Positions 3,050 to 52,730 of a stretch of DNA of 64,000 nucleotides are shown piece by piece. This DNA is from Dimorphilus gyrociliatus (Eukaryota; Animalia; Annelida): positions 1,178,001 through 1,242,000 of the forward strand of contig CAJFCJ010000001.1 of the NCBI GenBank assembly GCA_904063045.1, in the 5' to 3' direction. Position 1 is the stretch's first letter, and every line of letters begins with the position of its first letter. Below the pieces are notes generated by a model that worked only from the letters and a program-made list of their open reading frames with translations, was not told the origin of the DNA and made no database searches. A program made the position numbers and the translations under genes.

Positions 3050-4466
3050 ATGAATTTTCGTTTAATCTTTCTTCTATGTCTCTTTTACAGTCAATATATT
3101 TCGTGTGAAAATTATTTAAAAAGAGAGCATTCTTTAGTGAAACCTTACCAAGGTACCATTTATTTTCATACTTTTTATTGTAGATGTATGACGAATCTTT
3201 AGGACAAAGCAGACGATGTCGGTGTTCGCTTTTTTAGTTATTTTTTCACTTATCACTTAGATGGGAAGTGGGATTTTGTTGGCAGTACCATGGTTACCAA
3301 TAGTTATATACGATTAACTCCTGATCACCAGAGTAGACAAGGCGCTATATGGAATAATATTGTAAGTGTTACTTGTAATTTACACATAACCTTTTCACTT
3401 TTTATTTTTTATTCAAATAGCCTAACACTATACCAGACTGGGAACTTCATGTTAGTTTTAAAGTTCATGGAACTGGAACTGATTTATTTGGAGATGGGAT
3501 GTCGATTTGGTATACCAAAGAGAGACTACAATTAGGTTAGTTAACTCTCTTTTATAGAATCTCATTCACACGACACGTCTGTTTTAGGACCTGTATTTGG
3601 AAATAAAGATTATTTTAATGGATTGGGCGTCTTCCTGGATACATACAGCAACCACAATGGACCACATAATGTTAGTTGGATAACATACTTCTTTCGTAAA
3701 ACGCCATCTGGCAAACATTACTTTTTATTGATAGAACTGTATTCATTAAAGTGCTTGAACACTTACAAATTTAAAATTTGTTTACACAGCATGGCCATCC
3801 TTATATATCTGCTATGGTAAACAATGGCACTGGACATTATGATCATGACAAAGATGGAACACACACGGAATTATCTGGATGTGAATCCCATTTTAGAGGC
3901 GCAGATACAGATACACTTATTGCTATTCGATACTTGAATAATAAACTAGTTGTGTCAACTGATATTGAGGGAAAAAATGAATGGAGAGAGTGTTTCTCTG
4001 TAGAGGGTGTTCGTTTACCAACTGGATATTATTTTGGAGCATCAGCTGCAACAGGAGACTTAGCCGATAACCATGATATTATATCGATGAAACTTTACGA
4101 ACTTGAGGGAAATCGAAAGGTAACTGAAAGAAAATATTTAATATCAAATAGAATATTGACTGCAGCTCTTTAAATATAAATTATTTCCTATTTAGGAAGG
4201 TGAAGACTTTTCCAAAATTTCACCAGAGGCAGACTTTTTTGTTCCCCCTAGAGGTAAATCACTTCTAAATGTAAACACATTCAGCCTAACAGAGATTCTC
4301 ATAAATCATTCCAGATCACATTGATGATGCCAAGCCGTCTTCACTCTCTGGATGGAAATTATTTTTCCTAATTGTTATCGGTTTAGTGGGAGTATCAGTC
4401 TGTGCCATGATTGGTTTTGTAATTGTTACTAAAAGAGCAGAAGACCAGCGAAAGAGATTTTATTAG
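3050..4466 (+). CDS. LMAN2: VIP36/LMAN2 L-type lectin, multi-exon
   Basis: Signal peptide, EHSLVKPYQ, WDFVGSTMVTNSYIRLTPDHQSRQGAIWN, FLDTYSNHNG, GYYFGASAATGDLADNHDI, a TM helix and the C-terminal KRFY motif. Confidence 0.92.
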
Positions 4467-15868: not shown

Positions 15869-17261
15869 AACTTTTATAAATATTCTAATATCTAAAGTTC
15901 TAGTTAAAAGTTTCTTGTTAACTGCTCGGTAGAACTGCCATTAATAATTTAACTTGGATATTTATATACTTTTCAGTGAGTTCTTATCAAGGCGTGTTCA
16001 ATATTTACCAACGCTCCTTCTTTAATGACAAGCAAACATATATTATCAGTGTTTCTAGATATCTCTAGGCTGACAAAAGACGTTTCGTCATGGAAACCGT
16101 CAACTAATTATAATATTTATTCTATCAGGCTTTGTATTGTATTTATAATAAATATTATCAAGTATCTCGATGTGGTTCCTAACAAATAAACTATCAATGC
16201 GAAGTATTTACATCAAAAGATATGGTAATGTATTTTCTTCCCCGTTTCGTGAAAAAATCTCTCAAACAGTTAGTCAATTCTATATGACTATATTCTTTCA
16301 ATTTTCAGTAATAGGACAAGTCATTCATTCCTAAAAAGATAACTTTTTTTACAACAGAATTTTTACTTCCTAAAATAGTTCGAGTATTTTGCAACTTCCT
16401 ATTCAAGATACGTTTTCGAAAAGATAAAATGCAATAAATTCGATTAGCAAATTATTTTCATTTTATATCTATTAGGAGAATTCGAGTTTTATATTGCGAT
16501 TTTCGATTGTTGCATAGTATAGTCTATACGTATTTAATATGGAGAGAATGTGTACTGTATATATCGAAATTGTTATTTTATTAGGGCTTTAAGCGATTTA
16601 TTGACAAATTGAAATCGTTCAGTTTTGTTTCCTTTATAGCTTGTAATCTACAGTATATGATTTAAAATGATTGTTATACGATCAGAATAAATAAGAGTAA
16701 ATACGGAATATGACGTATAGGATATTTGGTCTTTTTTCATATTCCTTTTTTAGCAATAGAAAAAATTCAAAATTTCAGTTCGTGACTATTTCTCTGATTT
16801 AGCATCAAGCATATCAAGCTTGGTCACGAATTAAGATAAGAAAATTCGAAAAGTCGATACACAAACGTTCCAAAATCTGACAACGTATGGTCTATAATTT
16901 CAACTGATCTAGTTAAATCTAAATATGTATATACTGTATATGTATAGAAAGTATGCGAGAGTCTAGCACTTTCTGTTCGTTTTCACGATTTCTTATCATC
17001 TCTTAGCAAAAATAATAGTTGAAAAGAATATATCGGTTGAGCAGTTTTGATTTACAACGGTTTCTTTTATATAAATTTATCTACGTAGGGTTCATTTTAC
17101 CAGATGATTATATTCTCTAGATTTGAATAAATATATTATCTCTAAAATGATAACATTATTTTTCGTATAGTCAATTTTATAAGTTAGTAATTTAAAGAAA
17201 ATATAAGACAATATATAGCTTTATTTTCGTTTTTTTCCTCTTCTTTTGTTCTTTTATTATT

Positions 17262-20200
17262 TTAAATAGAGAATTTTGTCTCCCTTCGATCAGCCGATAG
17301 CATAATTAACGTTTTAGGATCTACCCATACTAGCCTAGCTAATTTATGTACAGCAATTCCAGCTGCCGGCTGCCACTGTGGAGCTGAAAGGGTTTTTATA
17401 CATCGAGTCTGGCTTCCACCCATTGTAAAGATTGATGAAGAACCAAACTGCCAAATGCAGACAGTGTTATCGACTAGCGAATATGATGCGCAATATTTTG
17501 AATCGGGAGATATGCTAACGGCAGCTATCTGTCCTTTATGGGAGTGAAAAACCTGGCATTTTTGATGTTTTAGGTCATAAATAGCTAAAGAACCAGTTTT
17601 CGATCCGCAAGCAACTTTTTTAGAGGAATGACACGATGACAGCATTGCTAATTTACATAAAGCTGGAAATAGTTCGTGCAATCCAGATTGTTTAAGGGAT
17701 GCTGAGTCGAGACAATGGATACTAACATCGACTACTTCGATAAGCATTTGCACGACGTTAGCCGTACTTTTGTCCACTAAAACTTCTAAAATTTTCAAAA
17801 TGTCCTTCTTCGCTCTGATAAGTATGGAATTCGATAAAGTTGCTGACGGAGTCTGAGACTGCGCAACTAATGCATTATATCTGGCAACCTCACGAGCCAT
17901 TGTTGAAATAAAATTCGCTGGTCTTGCTTTAGCTATCATTTCTAAGGAATTTCTGGCCGACCTGCAAGCATCAGCGGCCGAACTAAGAGGCAATCTTGAA
18001 TTTGATGCTGGTAATAATTTTTCGCTGCCAACACAAAATTCTAATAGTCCCAATAAAACTGCCGCAACATCTAGATAAGGCTCCCAGACTGTAAAGCCTC
18101 TACCAAGTAGGTCAACGGCCGCTCTTTGCATTATTGAATTTTGAGTATGTGACTTTAGAACAATGTGAGACAAAGCCTTAGACGTTATCATTGCTAGACT
18201 ATAATCTTTAATTCCAAAACCATCCGGAGCAGCCTGTTCTCTATTTTGGGGTGATGGTGCTATCTGTGCTCCGAATTCCGAACCAATCACAGCCATAAGT
18301 ACAATAGCAGTCGCTTGTCGCCGTCTGCTACCAAGGTCCAATCCTTCTACCAACAATTGCTCATCGTCATCTTCTTCTTCTTCAACTTCTTGCTCAGGTC
18401 CGGATAAAGGAGTTAAATCTTTATCTTTCGATTTTGGTGGCGATTGAGATTTCTCCTCGAAATTAGGAATAAGAGATCCCCATTTCTCTACTAATTTTTG
18501 TCTTCCTTCTCCTCCCATATGCCTTAATTCGGCCATTAGTAATGCTCTCGCAGCTTCTCTAATTTCTAAGCATCGATGCTGCCATCGTCTAGCCAATTCG
18601 GGTAACGAAACAGGAACATATTTATCGCCCAATAAATCTGGAAGCAGAACACAATGGAATGCCGCTATCCTACTCCAGTTTTGTTTTGTTGAATTTTCAT
18701 ACGATCCATCTCCCATCAAAGCATTAGCAACTGCAATAGCTGAGAGAACTCTGTGCGTAGATGAACGCCTTGACGTGCTTAACGATCGTGGAGCAGATCC
18801 GGGAACATACAACGTCATACGAGCTCCTCGAGAAACTAAACCAAAGCTGAACATACTTTTTGGTACCTTTAAGTTCAATTGATTTCGAACGATATCGTCT
18901 AAGGTGGGATCGATATCCCATAAATGAAGCAGGGACATTAAAAGTTTGGCTGCTTGAACTGATAGACTCTCTTTAGGTACAGGAGGCGGTGGTCTTGACG
19001 GTTTCGAACCCGGCGGTGCCGGTCTAGGTGGAGGACCTCCTCGACGTGGAGACGTTCGTGGAGACGAAGTTAGCCCTCGCCCAACGTCTCCTGCCTTATC
19101 TTTTACTTTGGCTAATATACTAGAAATGGAAAGTTCTTGTTTGGAATCGGATGAAGGTTCATTAGTTGACTGAAAATCTTTCGCGGCCTCCTCCGTTATT
19201 AATTGTACTATTAACGCTTCGACATCGAAGAAAAGTAAATGCGCGTCTGGATCGTTATTATTTGTTTTTAGACCTTGAATGATAATTGGAGCACTATCCC
19301 CCCTGACATTGATGCCGGAATCACCCTTGTCATCAGCAACATTGGAAGCTGTGAGTCGCTGCTGGGCAAGAGCTTTAAATGTTGCTAGATTTCGACGTCG
19401 GAATGCCTGAGCGAGTGATATTGTGGGATTTGTTAGATCGTCTTCAGATGTTTCAGTTGGTTTAACTGTTTTTTCCGTACAGGCTGCCATCATTTGTTCT
19501 GCCACCACACCATGTACTACCCTATCTAAATGACCCGTTTCCATTTGCCATACACTTACAGTACCGTCAGTGCAAGCAACAAGGACAAAGTCATCGTGAG
19601 GACGCCACCTTACAGCATGAATTGGAAACATATGTCTTGATGCTAAAAGAGTACATTTTTGATCTTTTAAATGAAGCAACGAAAGAGAATGATCAGAAGC
19701 AACAGCACAAATGCATGGCAAGACTCTTGGATTGCAGTTATTTGGTGGAACCAGCAGTTGAGTCAGCTCTCCCCCGTGTACAGTAAAAATATGCAGTTGG
19801 GTCTGTGAAATAACATCCCAGAGTATAACGCTAAAATCGACTCCTCCAGAAACTAAGTGTCGCTTATCGTATCTCTGATTCTCATTAAATGGGTACAACA
19901 AACATGATACTCGACCACAATGTTCACCCATAACTTGAATGGGTACAGCTTCAACTTGTTCACTTAAAAGTATAGAAGCGGCACATGATATAATAGGCAT
20001 GATTACGATTGTTCCATTTTCTCTACCGCAAACAATTTTTCCTTCAGATCGCATATAAGTTGTAGCGGTTACTTCTAATTTTTCTTCTCCTGATGCTTCG
20101 ATAACATCTACTATACCCCTTAATTTGTCACTCTTCCAAGCATCCTCCAACTTTGCTACGCATTTTGGCATTATCTTTGTTAATGAATCGAAACTATCTT

Positions 20201-34533: not shown

Positions 34534-36063
34534 ATGGATTTGACTGTTAAAGATACAGTTTCTTCGGCAATCATCCTCCGTAAAAAAACTCTGAGAGATC
34601 TCAGTCATAAAATATGGTCTAACCCAGAAATCGGTTTTCAAGAGCATTTGGCTCATGATATAATAACGTCGTTCTTATCAAGTGAAAATTTTCAGGTCGA
34701 ACGAGAGTTTGTCCTGAAAACTGGCTTCAGGGCAACTTATAAAAATTCAGAAAGTTCAGCGGATGGGTGTCCAAATATTTGCTTTATTTGTGAATATGAC
34801 GCTGCGTGTGAAATTGGGCACGCTTCGGGTCATAATTTGCTAACAACAGCTAGTTTGGCAGCAGCCATAGGACTAAAAAGTTGTGTTGAAAAGAATTTGA
34901 TTAACGCTGAAGTAATTACAACAACACACATGTTTAATAGCTCAATTAAATTCATCACTTTAAATTAAATTATTCCAGGTGACAGTTATCGGTACGCCTG
35001 CAGAATTGTGCGGTGGAGGTACAAAGATTGATATGATTAAACATGGAGCTTTTAAACAAGTTGACGCAGCTTTGATGTTGTCACCATTCGATAAGAACCT
35101 TGCCAGTCCTCCAGCTTTCTGTTTGCTTTCCGTTACCGGTAAGTTTAGTCAATAGAATTGTGATATACCTTATATTTATTTATTCTGCAATAACGCGTAA
35201 ATCTCTTTTATTTTAATAAAGTTACGTATAAAGGGAAAGCTGCGCATTATTCCGCTTATCCATGGGAAGGAAAAAATGCTCTAGATGCAGCGGTCGCATG
35301 TTATAATAATATAGCACTCTTAAGGCAGGGGTTAAAGCCCAATTGGATGGTTAACGGTTTGTACATAAAGCATTTCTTATCTGTATTAGCTTACCTGTCA
35401 CTTTTCTATCAGGAATTATTACTAACGGTGGAGCAATGCCTAACATTGTTCCAGCAATAACAGAGATGAAATTTTGGCTTCGAGCCCCATCCCACACTGA
35501 TTTAATATTTTTGCAACAGAAATGTGCAGCTTGTTTCGTTGCTGCAGCCAAAGTACGAGTATATTGCTTTTCTTAGGAACAATATGATTTTATTATATGA
35601 CAATTATCTTAGGCAACTGGCTGTGAGGCGCAATTCAATTTTGAAGATAATATCTATTATCCTATGATTCAAAACAAGAGATTGGGCGATTTGTACAAAA
35701 ATTGCGCCAATGAAGTTGGACTAGAAATGGATACTGATGAAAGTGCAACCCATATTGGATCAACTGATATGGGAAATGTTTCTCAGGTTGTTCCATGTCT
35801 TGATTCAGCTTTCAATATTGGAACCTCAGCTGTTGAACTGTCAGAAACTTTCAGAGACGATTGTAATACCGAGAGAGCTCACGGTTTGTTATACTATTTG
35901 TATTTAAAAGTATTATTCGTAACGTATCATTATGTGGATAGAAAACACCCTTCAAGCTGCAACCGCTTTAGCCTATTCAGCTGCTCTTTTGTGCAAAGAT
36001 AAAGAAAAAATGTCCTCAGTTAAAGAAGAATTTGAAAGTCAGAAAACATCTCTTAGAGTGTAA
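34534..36063 (+). CDS. Peptidase M20D / PM20D2-like protein, predicted catalytically inactive
   Basis: IWSNPEIGFQEH, EYDA..GHASGHNL, GTPAEL, YPWEGKNALDAAV and GSTDMGNVS. Six exons splice in frame with no stops. Confidence 0.88.
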
Positions 36064-38509: not shown

Positions 38510-38962
38510 ACGAGAATTGAAGCTTAATGATAGACTTACTCTTCTCAGCCACTAGAAAATCGATATCACAAAGAAATATCTTAAACAAACTGAAACACGT
38601 GGAAAAATATGTTCTGTTTTGTATAAGCTGTTTCATTACATAAATTTCAAAGCTATTATAATTTTTTTAGAATCTTTTCAATACTAAAACTGCAATTGTT
38701 CATTTATTCATGATAAGTAAAAATGAACATTTGCAAAATGTATATATACATATATATATAATACTAATAATTCTTCTACAGTTCTTTTTCAATAGAATAT
38801 TAATTATATTCCCAAATCTATTATTATTTGTGAAAAAAAGTGTTAAGAGAAGGAGAAAGTGTAAAAGAGAAAGAAGAACTACATAGTATAGTCAACTACT
38901 ATCACAGACGTTTTGTATACTTCAACTTAAAGAACAAGCAAGTACAGTATAGAAATTTGTGT

Positions 38963-41212: not shown

Positions 41213-42918
41213 CTAGTTTCCGTATTTTTTAAAGCATGAAATGACATCTTCAACGTCCTCCTTCGATCCAAGGAATATTGGGCTTCTTTGATGGATTGTT
41301 TCCGGCTGAATATCCAAAATATTACCAGTTCCGGTGGTTGCTAAGCCTCCTGCTTGTTCCATAATGAATGCCATTGGGTTGCATTCGTACAAAAGACGAA
41401 GTTTTCCATTTGGAGTTTCAGTTGTTGCAGGGTACGCAAAGATACCGCCGTAGCATAAAGTTCTGTGGACATCAGCAACCATAGAGCCAATGTACCTAGC
41501 TCCGTAGGGCTTGCCGCTCTGACAGTAAAATTAATATTAATTAGAGAATACTTTAAACTTTTTCATTTAACTTACAGCTGGTTTTTTCTTGCTATCAATG
41601 TACTTTTTTACTGGTTCTTGCCAAAGAGCAGAATATCCTTCATTAAGGGAGTAAATTTTTCCTTTTGGCTTAATACGAATATTTCTTTCGGTCAAAATAA
41701 ATTCTCCGATAGACTGAAAGTACACAAATTAAAACTATTTAATAATCAACATGAACATTTATATCGTACCGGATCCAACATAAAACCATTGACACCATTT
41801 CCGACACTTAATACTAACATGGTAGCACTACCATATAAGCAATAGCCCGATGCAATGATTTGTCTACCTGGCTGTAAAGCATCTTTAATATTAGCCGCTC
41901 CATCGCTAATCTATAAAAGAGAATATTTATATAAAAATTCAATATATGTTTATGTTGATAATTTAAACAACTCACCTTCTTGTAGATGGCAAAAATAGTT
42001 CCAATAGAAACCAGACAGTCAATGTTAGAAGATCCATCGAGTGGGTCAAAACAAACAACGTACTTTCCCTAAAATTTACAAAATTTATCATTAACAGTTT
42101 AATTTTATATAGATTAGTCAATAGAACACAGGCTAGAGGCATTCATGAAAAATAAAGGTTGTGGATATTACTAATTACACGAGACGTTAGCAAGAAAAGT
42201 TGTAACGACTTTAATCACACTCTTTATATGACAACATGTACTTACCACCGGTCCCTATAAGGACAAAGATAAAGCATATTAAAAAGAGCATCACGTGATC
42301 GGTCGACAGTGTTTATTGGTTTAGATAGTAAATTCTTTGTTTCCAGGTTAAATAGAGTATAATTACTTGTATTCATTAGCCAATTAACTATGAAACTTAT
42401 ATTTACCTGTTTATCTGATTCAACCTCAATAACTTTTTCGTTCTCCTCACTGACCATAAGACATGTAGTGTAACTAGATCTCAGCATGTTGATGAATAGG
42501 TCATTGGAAAGGACATCCAATTTCTTTACATCTTCTCCTTGAACATTCGTAGAACCAGCCATACCATATCTGAAAACGGGTGCAATAATTAAAAATTTTT
42601 GCAAATAAAGTCGAATATGACCGGCTTGGCTTATGCATTGCTTTCAGAATTGCAGAACTGTGCATTACAACATCTTCGATCTCACAAAGATATTATTATT
42701 ATGCACTTAAAGTTATGCATTGGAAGCTAATATTATTCTTACAATTTGGCAATTCCGGCTTTTCTTACAGCTGTTGAAATGGCTTTGCAAGCCGTACATA
42801 TTGCTGTCATTAATTGCGTTAAATCTCCAGTAGCATGAGGATGTTTTCTTTGTTCCGCTAGTAAATAACGGGTCAAAGTCATACAGTCAGTATCAATACC
42901 AGAAGAAGTTCCTGCCAT
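41213..42918 (-). CDS. FBP1: Fructose-1,6-bisphosphatase class 1, multi-exon
   Basis: [57 protein letters not shown] and [14 protein letters not shown]. Confidence 0.96.
42246..42254 (-). other. Candidate 9-nt microexon (Gly-Pro-Val) in FBPase
   Basis: atgctttatctttgtccttatag|GGACCGGTG|gtaagt, phase 0-0. Flanking introns are 152 and 177 nt. Confidence 0.7.
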
Positions 42919-50556: not shown

Positions 50557-52730
50557 CTAACGCTCTTTAAAATGTTCTGCAGCGAATTGCCTTGCTTCCG
50601 CCAGTCTAGATCGTCTGTATTTTGTAAGAGTTTAATTGAACTATAATTTTTTATTTAAATATTTATAAATAAAAATATAAAACTTACTGGCTTGATCGAC
50701 TAGTTGGAGGCGGAGATTGGTTTTCTTGCGGTGAGGATGGTAGTTGGCTCATCTTTTCCCAGAACGATGTCATACTGAGAAAAGAGAAATGGAATAATAG
50801 AAGAAGATATTATTAAAATTGCTTTACTTATTTGATAGATATTTTTCAAATTCTGATATATCACTTTCAAGAGTCTTCAATTGGGATTCTATTTGTTTCG
50901 AACTAATTACTAAGATATAAAAACAAGAATTGTTATTATTCTATTAGGATTCTTTGCACTTAATACGGTACCGCTTGTTGCCGCCGAAAGCGGTCTAAAA
51001 TAGGGCATAGAAGCAGTGTTATTCGTCTTTGTAAAATGAACCTAAAATAAAGAAAATGTGTTAATCTAATCCATACTCTAAAACATATCTATTAATAAAA
51101 ATAACTACCCCATCCAATATATGTAATGTCTCTATTTCATTTTGGAGAGATGTTATATAATTGTTTTCCTTTGTACACGGGTTGCATTGAACATTCAATT
51201 CAACTAAAGAAGCTAATTTCTTTAAATTCCTCTGTAAAGAAGTAAAAATAGATCTTGTTAAGAAAGGGGACCTGTTGATAGTCTACACTTATACGTAGGC
51301 CTAAGGCTGTTTAAAATATTTTGGTAAGAATAGCTTATTTTTTTACCAATTCTTGGAAATTTTCTATGTAATTATAACTGACATCCAGAATTTCTAAAGT
51401 ATTACTATAGTTGACTAGAAGATCTTTTGTTTCTCTTAATCGATTATTCGACAAATAGAATTCTTGCAGATCCCTATAAACAGACATATATAAGTCAATA
51501 TAATATAATAATCAGCTTTCAAGAAGTACTTTAGTTTCCCCAGAGATGATAGGCTTGTTAAGCAATTGTTGTTTACTCGTAGAATCTGTACAGAGAAGAC
51601 GGAGAAGAAAGAGAAATTTTAGCATTTAAAGAAAATTTCTTATTAGAAATATTATTACTTGAAGTTTAGAAGATCCTTTCAACCTCGATAGATCAGAAAT
51701 CTTATTGTCTGATAAATCAACTTCTTGTAACTGAATAAGCGAAAATGAGAATAATACTAAAAATAATAATAACAATAATAACCTTTGAGCATCTACATAA
51801 TTCTGGAATATTTTTTAAGTTGTTGTGAGTAACTCTTAAGTCTTCCAAATTAGGTAAATAACATACTGCCTGCAATAAAATATAGGAAGGTTGTAACAAA
51901 ACAAATAGCCTTATTAAGAATGATATAAAAGAAATAAAGTACCGTTATATTTTCTAACTTATTATGACTTAAATCCAGATAAGTTATAAGGGAACAACTG
52001 GACAATTCTCGCGTTTCCAATTTATATATATAGTTATTGTCTAATCGTAGTGTTTTTAAACGTTTTAAAGCTTGAAGACCATTGCCTATCAAAGGAATAG
52101 GAAACAAAGTGTATCAAGTTAGAACATTTGGTATAAATAGAAAAATTAGTCTCCTATCTCTTTATGTCATATAGAGTTGTATAACTTATAAGTAAAATTA
52201 TATATCTATATAGGAAATAGTAATATTAATACCCAAAGTAGAAAGTTTATTATATTGCAATTGTAAACATTCTAATAAACGGAAGTTTTCCAGGTTGTCA
52301 ATACATCTTATATTGTTCCCATAGAGTTTTAGCTCTCGAAGTTCCTGTATATTCGTTAAATAGATAAATATGCTCGTCATTTATTCATCAAATAGACAGT
52401 TTTGTTTAACATTGACAATTTACTTACCGTATTCTTGTCCAAATTTTCTATATTTTCAATTCTATTATTACTCAAATCTATTAGACGAACTTTGACAAAC
52501 TGTTGTAAAAAAAAAGAAGAAAGAAAGAGGACTATGTCCATAAACAAGACCAAACTTATGCAAAAACTGCAGTATGTTTGCAACGCAATTCGATAGTTTA
52601 TACTTGTATTATAGTTAACCTAATTTAATATTTTTTTCATTTGTAAATATATAAATACGTTATATAAAAATAACATAAGCACAGACTACTAACAAATAAC
52701 TATGGACTGTATATATACTATATGTATAAA

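Follow-up and report, generated by a model that had tools for sequence, protein, structure and literature searches.

In a 64,000-nucleotide (nt) stretch of the Dimorphilus gyrociliatus genome (GenBank assembly GCA_904063045.1, contig CAJFCJ010000001.1, positions 1,178,001 to 1,242,000, forward strand; hereafter the window), the gene for a class-I fructose-1,6-bisphosphatase (FBPase) raises a question: does its long second intron hide an exon of only 9 nt, placed immediately before residues that bind the allosteric inhibitor adenosine monophosphate (AMP)? FBPase carries out the step that commits metabolism to gluconeogenesis, and AMP inhibits it in a textbook example of allosteric switching, which vertebrates tune by means of two genes. 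An earlier inspection of the window without database searches (the sequence-only reading) had proposed such a microexon and had named no precedent in FBPases; our literature search likewise found no paper linking the term "microexon" with FBPase, the matches for FBP1 concerning other proteins. We found that a microexon in FBPase intron 2 is real in close relatives, where it is seen both as mRNA isoforms and as a conserved island within the intron. Judged from these sequence comparisons, the 9-nt unit of the window would, with a probability of about 0.78, be a genuine cassette microexon of FBPase, homologous to an alternatively included 6-nt Gly-X microexon of relatives that are probably annelids.

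A 9-nt unit in the second intron

Most introns of this genome are about 60 nt long, and introns 1 to 5 of the FBPase gene measure 173, 338, 65, 56 and 57 nt, intron 2 being the longest. Intron 2 (42406-42069, minus strand; all positions are those of the window) starts with GTAAAT at 42406 and finishes with ...TTTTAG at 42069. Within it lies the unit ctttatctttgtccttatag/GGACCGGTG/gtaagtac (slashes mark putative splice junctions), which has tatag on its acceptor side, pyrimidines at 10 of the 12 positions just upstream and a perfect GTAAGT donor. It thus has the properties expected of a microexon: no more than 27 nt, a multiple of three, no stop codon, AG and GT flanks and a pyrimidine tract. 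In addition, UGCU occurs at -22 and -36 from its 3' splice site. The details given by the sequence-only reading, from the length of the intron to the donor, the tract, the phase and the UGCU positions, are all correct. The elements are as follows.

42254-42246, minus strand: candidate microexon GGACCGGTG (Gly-Pro-Val), 9 nt, phase 0-0, recognised from the sequence and from homologous 6-nt units
42406-42255, minus strand: upstream half-intron, 152 nt, with GTAAAT donor, TTAAT branch-point-like motif near -27 and pyrimidine tract
42245-42069, minus strand: downstream half-intron, 177 nt, with GTAAGT donor and ...TTAATGATAAATTTTGTAAATTTTAG acceptor
42254-42249, minus strand: possible 6-nt form GGACCG (Gly-Pro), which would depend on a weak donor, GTGGTA, located 3 nt before GTAAGT

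The unit is very probably spliced in D. gyrociliatus. To the spliceosome, the 338-nt intron would then be a pair of introns, 152 and 177 nt long, and inclusion would insert Gly-Pro-Val, or Gly-Pro with the weak upstream donor, between residues 110 and 111 of the enzyme, extending the surface loop ahead of the strand whose first residues are Gly111-Lys112-Tyr113. In position, GGA start and GTAAGT donor the unit agrees with the units of relatives, which are 6 nt long. Most simply, GGACC-GGT-GGT-AAGT would be a 3-nt tandem duplication of an ancestral GGACCG/GTAAGT; the length difference would thus have arisen because the duplicated GGT moved the strong donor 3 nt downstream and added Val. The GTGGTA donor has about 4 matches to U1 compared to 7 for GTAAGT, and therefore mainly Gly-Pro-Val is expected, with Gly-Pro as a possible minor form; provided that the unit is spliced, dominance of the 9-nt form over the 6-nt form is highly probable on these donor sequences.

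A loose pattern (pyrimidine tract ending in YAG, 3-30 nt, GTAAGT) was matched by 5 units on the two strands of the window, against 2.8 expected from Markov shuffles, and all 5 were multiples of three, against 0.9 expected. This excess hints at some real exons and does not single out the FBPase unit. The pattern defined by the relatives (AG/GGA plus 3 or 6 nt/GTAAGT) appeared in none of 20,000 shuffles of the window's intron 2.

Isoforms and introns of related animals

To look for the insert in other animals, searches were keyed on single exons or on proteins returned from databases. A word search with the exon-2 open reading frame (ORF) returned 113 fragments, many of them exon ORFs in which ...EKQ is followed directly by intron sequence, starting with the V of GT...; the placement of intron 2 after the exon-2 Gln is thus common to many relatives. 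The insert was absent from all 23 fragments of this search that span the junction. A second search, seeded with a returned fragment, yielded full-length proteins in which the spacing from SEE to GKY was exactly 12 residues in 137 of 138 cases. Among the cluster members of those proteins that most resemble the window's exons, we found that P0192 (340 amino acids) and its cluster mate P0229 (342 amino acids) differ solely by a Gly-Thr between ...ETEKQ and GKYVV. The corresponding metatranscriptomic mRNA contigs, L011 (Logan ERR1712226) and L010 (JGI 3300008998), derive from one related species: L010 contains the insert in the context CAA/GGAACG/GGAAAG, has the same 5' untranslated region (UTR) as L011 and differs from it otherwise by 1 mismatch in 1023 nt of coding sequence.

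A tandem donor or acceptor (NAGNAG-type) is ruled out as the source of this 6-nt insert, which has neither a terminal AG nor an initial GT and whose flanks in L010 lack the AG or GT that such a site would need; the genomic units, moreover, sit 118-1551 nt inside their introns. A paralogue is ruled out by the near-identity of the two contigs elsewhere, 5' UTR included. The difference between L010 and L011 is a 6-nt cassette exon, and both its inclusion and its skipping are present in the mRNA of a single relative.

A third search, in which matches were scored over the 50 residues surrounding the P0229 insert, added five cluster representatives whose insert occupies this point: GS (P0235), GQ (P0236), GQ (P0237), GG (P0238) and G (P0277). 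The 12-residue spacing was kept in 221 of 228 animal FBPases. P0277 reads ...ESEKE-G-GKYVV, compared to ...ESEKE-GKYVV in its near relatives P0166 and P0159, the proteins closest to the FBPase of the window; since neither a NAGNAG nor a GTNGTN tandem site can yield the extra Gly, the microexon may have a 3-nt form here.

Maximum-likelihood analysis grouped the six insert-bearing proteins in one clade of 29 (Shimodaira-Hasegawa-like approximate likelihood ratio test 95), apart from named molluscs, a brachiopod, a bryozoan, arthropods and nematodes. Exon 6 of the window was placed inside this clade (support 85). The clade probably consists of annelids. Ranked by similarity to the window's exons, the insert-bearers are 3rd to 17th of 326 proteins. 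The inclusion form was found in 6 of the 29 representatives and the skipped form in 23, the inserts being spread over sub-lineages of the clade; such scatter would be expected if the alternative exon were ancestral and transcript assembly had sampled its forms. The full contigs that represent the inclusion forms come from RNA of bulk plankton or whole animals.

We then turned to genomic DNA, taking orthologous introns from contigs that carry exon-2 ORFs. (A search of metagenome contigs with the clade alignment keyed on universal motifs and returned almost only bacterial FBPases of about 50% identity.) The sequence-only reading had suggested looking for the same exon in orthologous introns; the unit is present there in a 6-nt version, as listed below.

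L003/L004: intron 2 of 1545 nt, with cag/GGAAGT/gtaagt at L003:4621-4626
L009: intron 2 of 554 nt, with cag/GGAAGC/gtaagt at L009:5180-5185
L001: intron 2 of 2941 nt, with cag/GGACAA/gtaagt at L001:2531-2536

Each of these introns contains exactly one match to the pattern AG/GGA plus 3 or 6 nt/GTAAGT, at an expectation of 5e-4 or less. The introns of L003 and L009 are unalignable except for a single significant block of 38 nt (E = 1e-6), which spans the unit, about 25 nt upstream of it and the donor, and in which the Ser codon differs synonymously (AGT in one, AGC in the other). These results demonstrate that the exon is conserved in the orthologous introns of these relatives. The 56-nt intron of the dipteran L008 lacks the unit, and the contigs L002 and L005 stop before exon 3. 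In the in-clade stretch L006:9295-18375 (89% to P0277), no exon 3 turned up within 9 kb of exon 2; two candidate units of 6 nt, GGGGCG at 16532 and GGCACG at 17544, have GTAAGT donors.

The insert and the AMP site

The FBPase gene comprises six constitutive exons on the minus strand (42918-41213), and its splice sites were read directly from the DNA. Its exon translations match the Pfam family PF00316 (FBPase; E = 9e-11 to 1e-15 per exon), and the C-terminal domain matches PF18913 (FBPase_C) at E = 1.5e-38. Both the metal/active-site motif DPLDGSSN and the AMP-site G-K-Y at residues 111-113 are present, as in class-I FBPases. The exons are the following.

42918-42743, minus strand: exon 1, constitutive
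42569-42407, minus strand: exon 2, ending ...EVESDKQ, equivalent to pig residues up to 110
42068-41976, minus strand: exon 3, with AMP ligands Lys112 and Tyr113 and the metal-site DPLDG motif
41910-41770, minus strand: exon 4, constitutive
41713-41576, minus strand: exon 5, constitutive
41518-41216 plus stop codon, minus strand: exon 6, constitutive

The gene model implied by the sequence-only reading holds except at the boundary of exons 1 and 2, which is one base off the naive ORF model: intron 1 is in phase 2 and splits a Leu codon as TT/A between the end of exon 1 (42743) and the start of exon 2 (42569), the protein sequence being unchanged. Around intron 2, exon 2 ends ...GAATCAGATAAACAG at 42407 and exon 3 starts with GGAAAGTAC (G-K-Y) at 42068.

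An ungapped alignment matches exon 3 to residues 111-141 of the FBPases of pig, human liver and human muscle (1cnq, 1eyi, 3ifa and others), and the insert therefore falls between residues 110 and 111 (pig numbering). It has been reported that Lys112 and Tyr113 hydrogen-bond AMP (PMC3785478) and that they start the allosteric signal toward the active site (PMC6400660). The alignment thus bears out the claim that the insert immediately precedes the Gly111-Lys112-Tyr113 of the AMP site.

To place the insert in a fold, we modelled the inclusion protein P0229 with AlphaFold. A first model built on a 20-sequence alignment was too poor (predicted local distance difference test, pLDDT, 62.5) and was replaced by one built on a 140-sequence alignment (mean pLDDT 86.5). 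In this model, the insert belongs to the loop 108-117, which is followed by a strand from Tyr118 onward, and the local pLDDT around it is lower, at about 74. An insert made of an unvarying Gly and then a residue free to vary, in a loop of otherwise fixed length, suggests a flexible extension that would reposition Lys112 and Tyr113, and a change in AMP affinity or cooperativity would therefore be plausible. That inclusion alters AMP affinity or cooperativity, so that one gene would give two differently regulated enzymes, has in our view slightly less than an even chance. More tentatively, the microexon of 6-9 nt could be an old, clade-wide (probably annelid) splice switch that toggles AMP control by producing an AMP-desensitised or re-tuned FBPase; we regard this wider proposal as possible, though rather less probable than its failure.

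Competing explanations and known parallels

Several points weigh against reading the unit as a functional cassette microexon. The case for splicing in D. gyrociliatus is drawn from the sequences of relatives, and genomic units and transcripts were compared across species rather than within one. Furthermore, the unit is 9 nt long in the window and 6 nt (in one case 3 nt) in relatives, and the 161-nt intron of L007, which is in-clade by best match (92% to P0196), has no unit, making a loss possible. Finally, the effect on AMP regulation is reached purely by inference.

The alternative that survives best is that the unit is spliced but functionally neutral, a tolerated noise whose extra residues lengthen a surface loop and leave regulation unchanged. 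At its second position the insert varies freely (S, Q, T, G, P), and it sits in just such a loop, where the confidence of the model drops. Against neutrality, several lineages have retained the unit together with its splice signals and its GGA codon for Gly while the surrounding intron has become unalignable, the length of the loop is otherwise invariant (221 of the 228 animal FBPases), and the insert abuts Lys112 and Tyr113, the initiators of the AMP signal (PMC6400660). We consider neutrality unlikely on balance.

It is less likely still that the unit is a relic or a chance pseudo-exon that is no longer spliced into mRNA in D. gyrociliatus. The dependence on relatives, the departure from their 6-nt length and the missing unit in L007 would all suit a pseudo-exon, as would the roughly 2.8 exon-like units that loose criteria predict by chance in the window. 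However, the pattern defined by the relatives is expected less than once in 20,000 in intron 2, and the unit preserves the reading frame between two near-perfect splice signals. Moreover, the intron still measures 338 nt compared to 56-173 nt elsewhere in the gene, whereas a dead exon should decay and its intron shrink.

A neuron-specific microexon driven by SRRM4/eMIC or Muscleblind through upstream UGC(U) motifs, the regulation that the sequence-only reading had suggested, is about as improbable. The two UGCU motifs upstream of the unit led to this idea, and the size and frame preservation of the unit suit the class. Yet neither the conserved UGC near the 3' splice site that marks SRRM4/eMIC targets nor the conserved clusters of YGCY that mark Muscleblind targets could be found: in L003, L009 and L001, the 42 nt that precede the homologous unit contain neither UGC nor UGCU. 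Because the motifs are not conserved, the proposal is left without comparative support. Two UGC in 40 nt are, besides, only mildly unusual (about 0.36 expected by a rough estimate from composition), inclusion forms were assembled from bulk RNA in several species and predominate among the contigs there, unlike what a rare neuron-only form would give, and FBPase is not a typical neuronal target.

The weakest alternative, constitutive inclusion in D. gyrociliatus with the skipped model as a wrong annotation, draws on a unit donor (GTAAGT) stronger than the outer GTAAAT and on a pyrimidine tract better than that of the exon 3 acceptor, but it is very improbable given that skipping and inclusion coexist in the one relative with both forms assembled and that the skipped form occurs in 23 of 29 clade representatives.

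Animal cassette microexons measure 3-27 nt and include a neural programme regulated by SRRM4/eMIC, with UGC upstream of the 3' splice site. Like them, the FBPase unit is tiny and frame-preserving, has strong splice sites of its own, would add to a surface loop adjoining a functional site and forms a conserved island in an otherwise diverged intron; the 6-nt exon of the relatives stands at the extreme short end of the range. Unlike typical microexons, its host is a central metabolic enzyme and not a neuronal or cytoskeletal protein, and unlike SRRM4/eMIC microexons, its UGC motif is not conserved among orthologues. Alternative microexons are a known kind, of which this one would have an unusual and testable placement. 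As a splice switch of AMP control, it would, to our knowledge, be the first microexon to edit the allosteric nucleotide site of a core metabolic enzyme.

A second parallel is offered by the vertebrate isozymes FBP1 (liver) and FBP2 (muscle), in which differences near the AMP pocket set AMP sensitivity (PMC3785478). Here, too, there would be two FBPase forms whose AMP sensitivity may differ; unlike the vertebrate pair, which consists of two genes that differ by substitutions, they would be splice products of one gene, set apart by an insertion in the loop at residues 110/111. We know of no solved FBPase structure with an insertion at this point. Chloroplast FBPase has a redox "170s" loop insertion with a disulfide controlled by thioredoxin. 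It resembles the present case as a short insertion in a class-I FBPase with a regulatory effect, which in the present case is proposed, but the position and the mechanism are different, and the chloroplast insertion is constitutively encoded whereas the present one is an optional exon.

If the microexon changes AMP sensitivity, a splice choice of two or three codons could re-wire the energy sensing of a core metabolic enzyme, as a single-gene counterpart of the vertebrate liver and muscle pair, and the loop variant at residues 110/111 would offer a natural means of probing the onset of the AMP signal. The finding would also correct the gene model of this locus, and it illustrates that exons of 6 nt can be found and supported from conservation together with isoform pairs in metatranscriptomes.

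Some further observations concern FBPases of other animals. The four isoforms X1-X4 of Lingula anatina (P0186, P0230, P0231, P0232), all of which lack an insert before GKY, are built from two alternative N-terminal exons and two nearly identical forms of a segment K(T/S)GKPYGARY...L(L/M)YGG...SE(T/S)P, which resembles a mutually exclusive exon pair in this brachiopod FBPase. The vertebrate models P0233, P0234, P0282 and P0289 (399-598 amino acids) each contain two FBPase N-terminal regions; they are probably read-through models that fuse tandem FBP genes, with inflated summed BLAST scores, and were disregarded in our comparisons. Elsewhere in the window, the four other units that match the loose pattern are 12-30 nt long and lie at 50688-50699 (minus strand), 38540-38551 (minus strand), 3332-3361 (plus strand) and 35115-35138 (plus strand). 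Some of them may be small exons or microexons of neighbouring genes, and the last sits within a gene that the sequence-only reading had labelled PM20D2-like.
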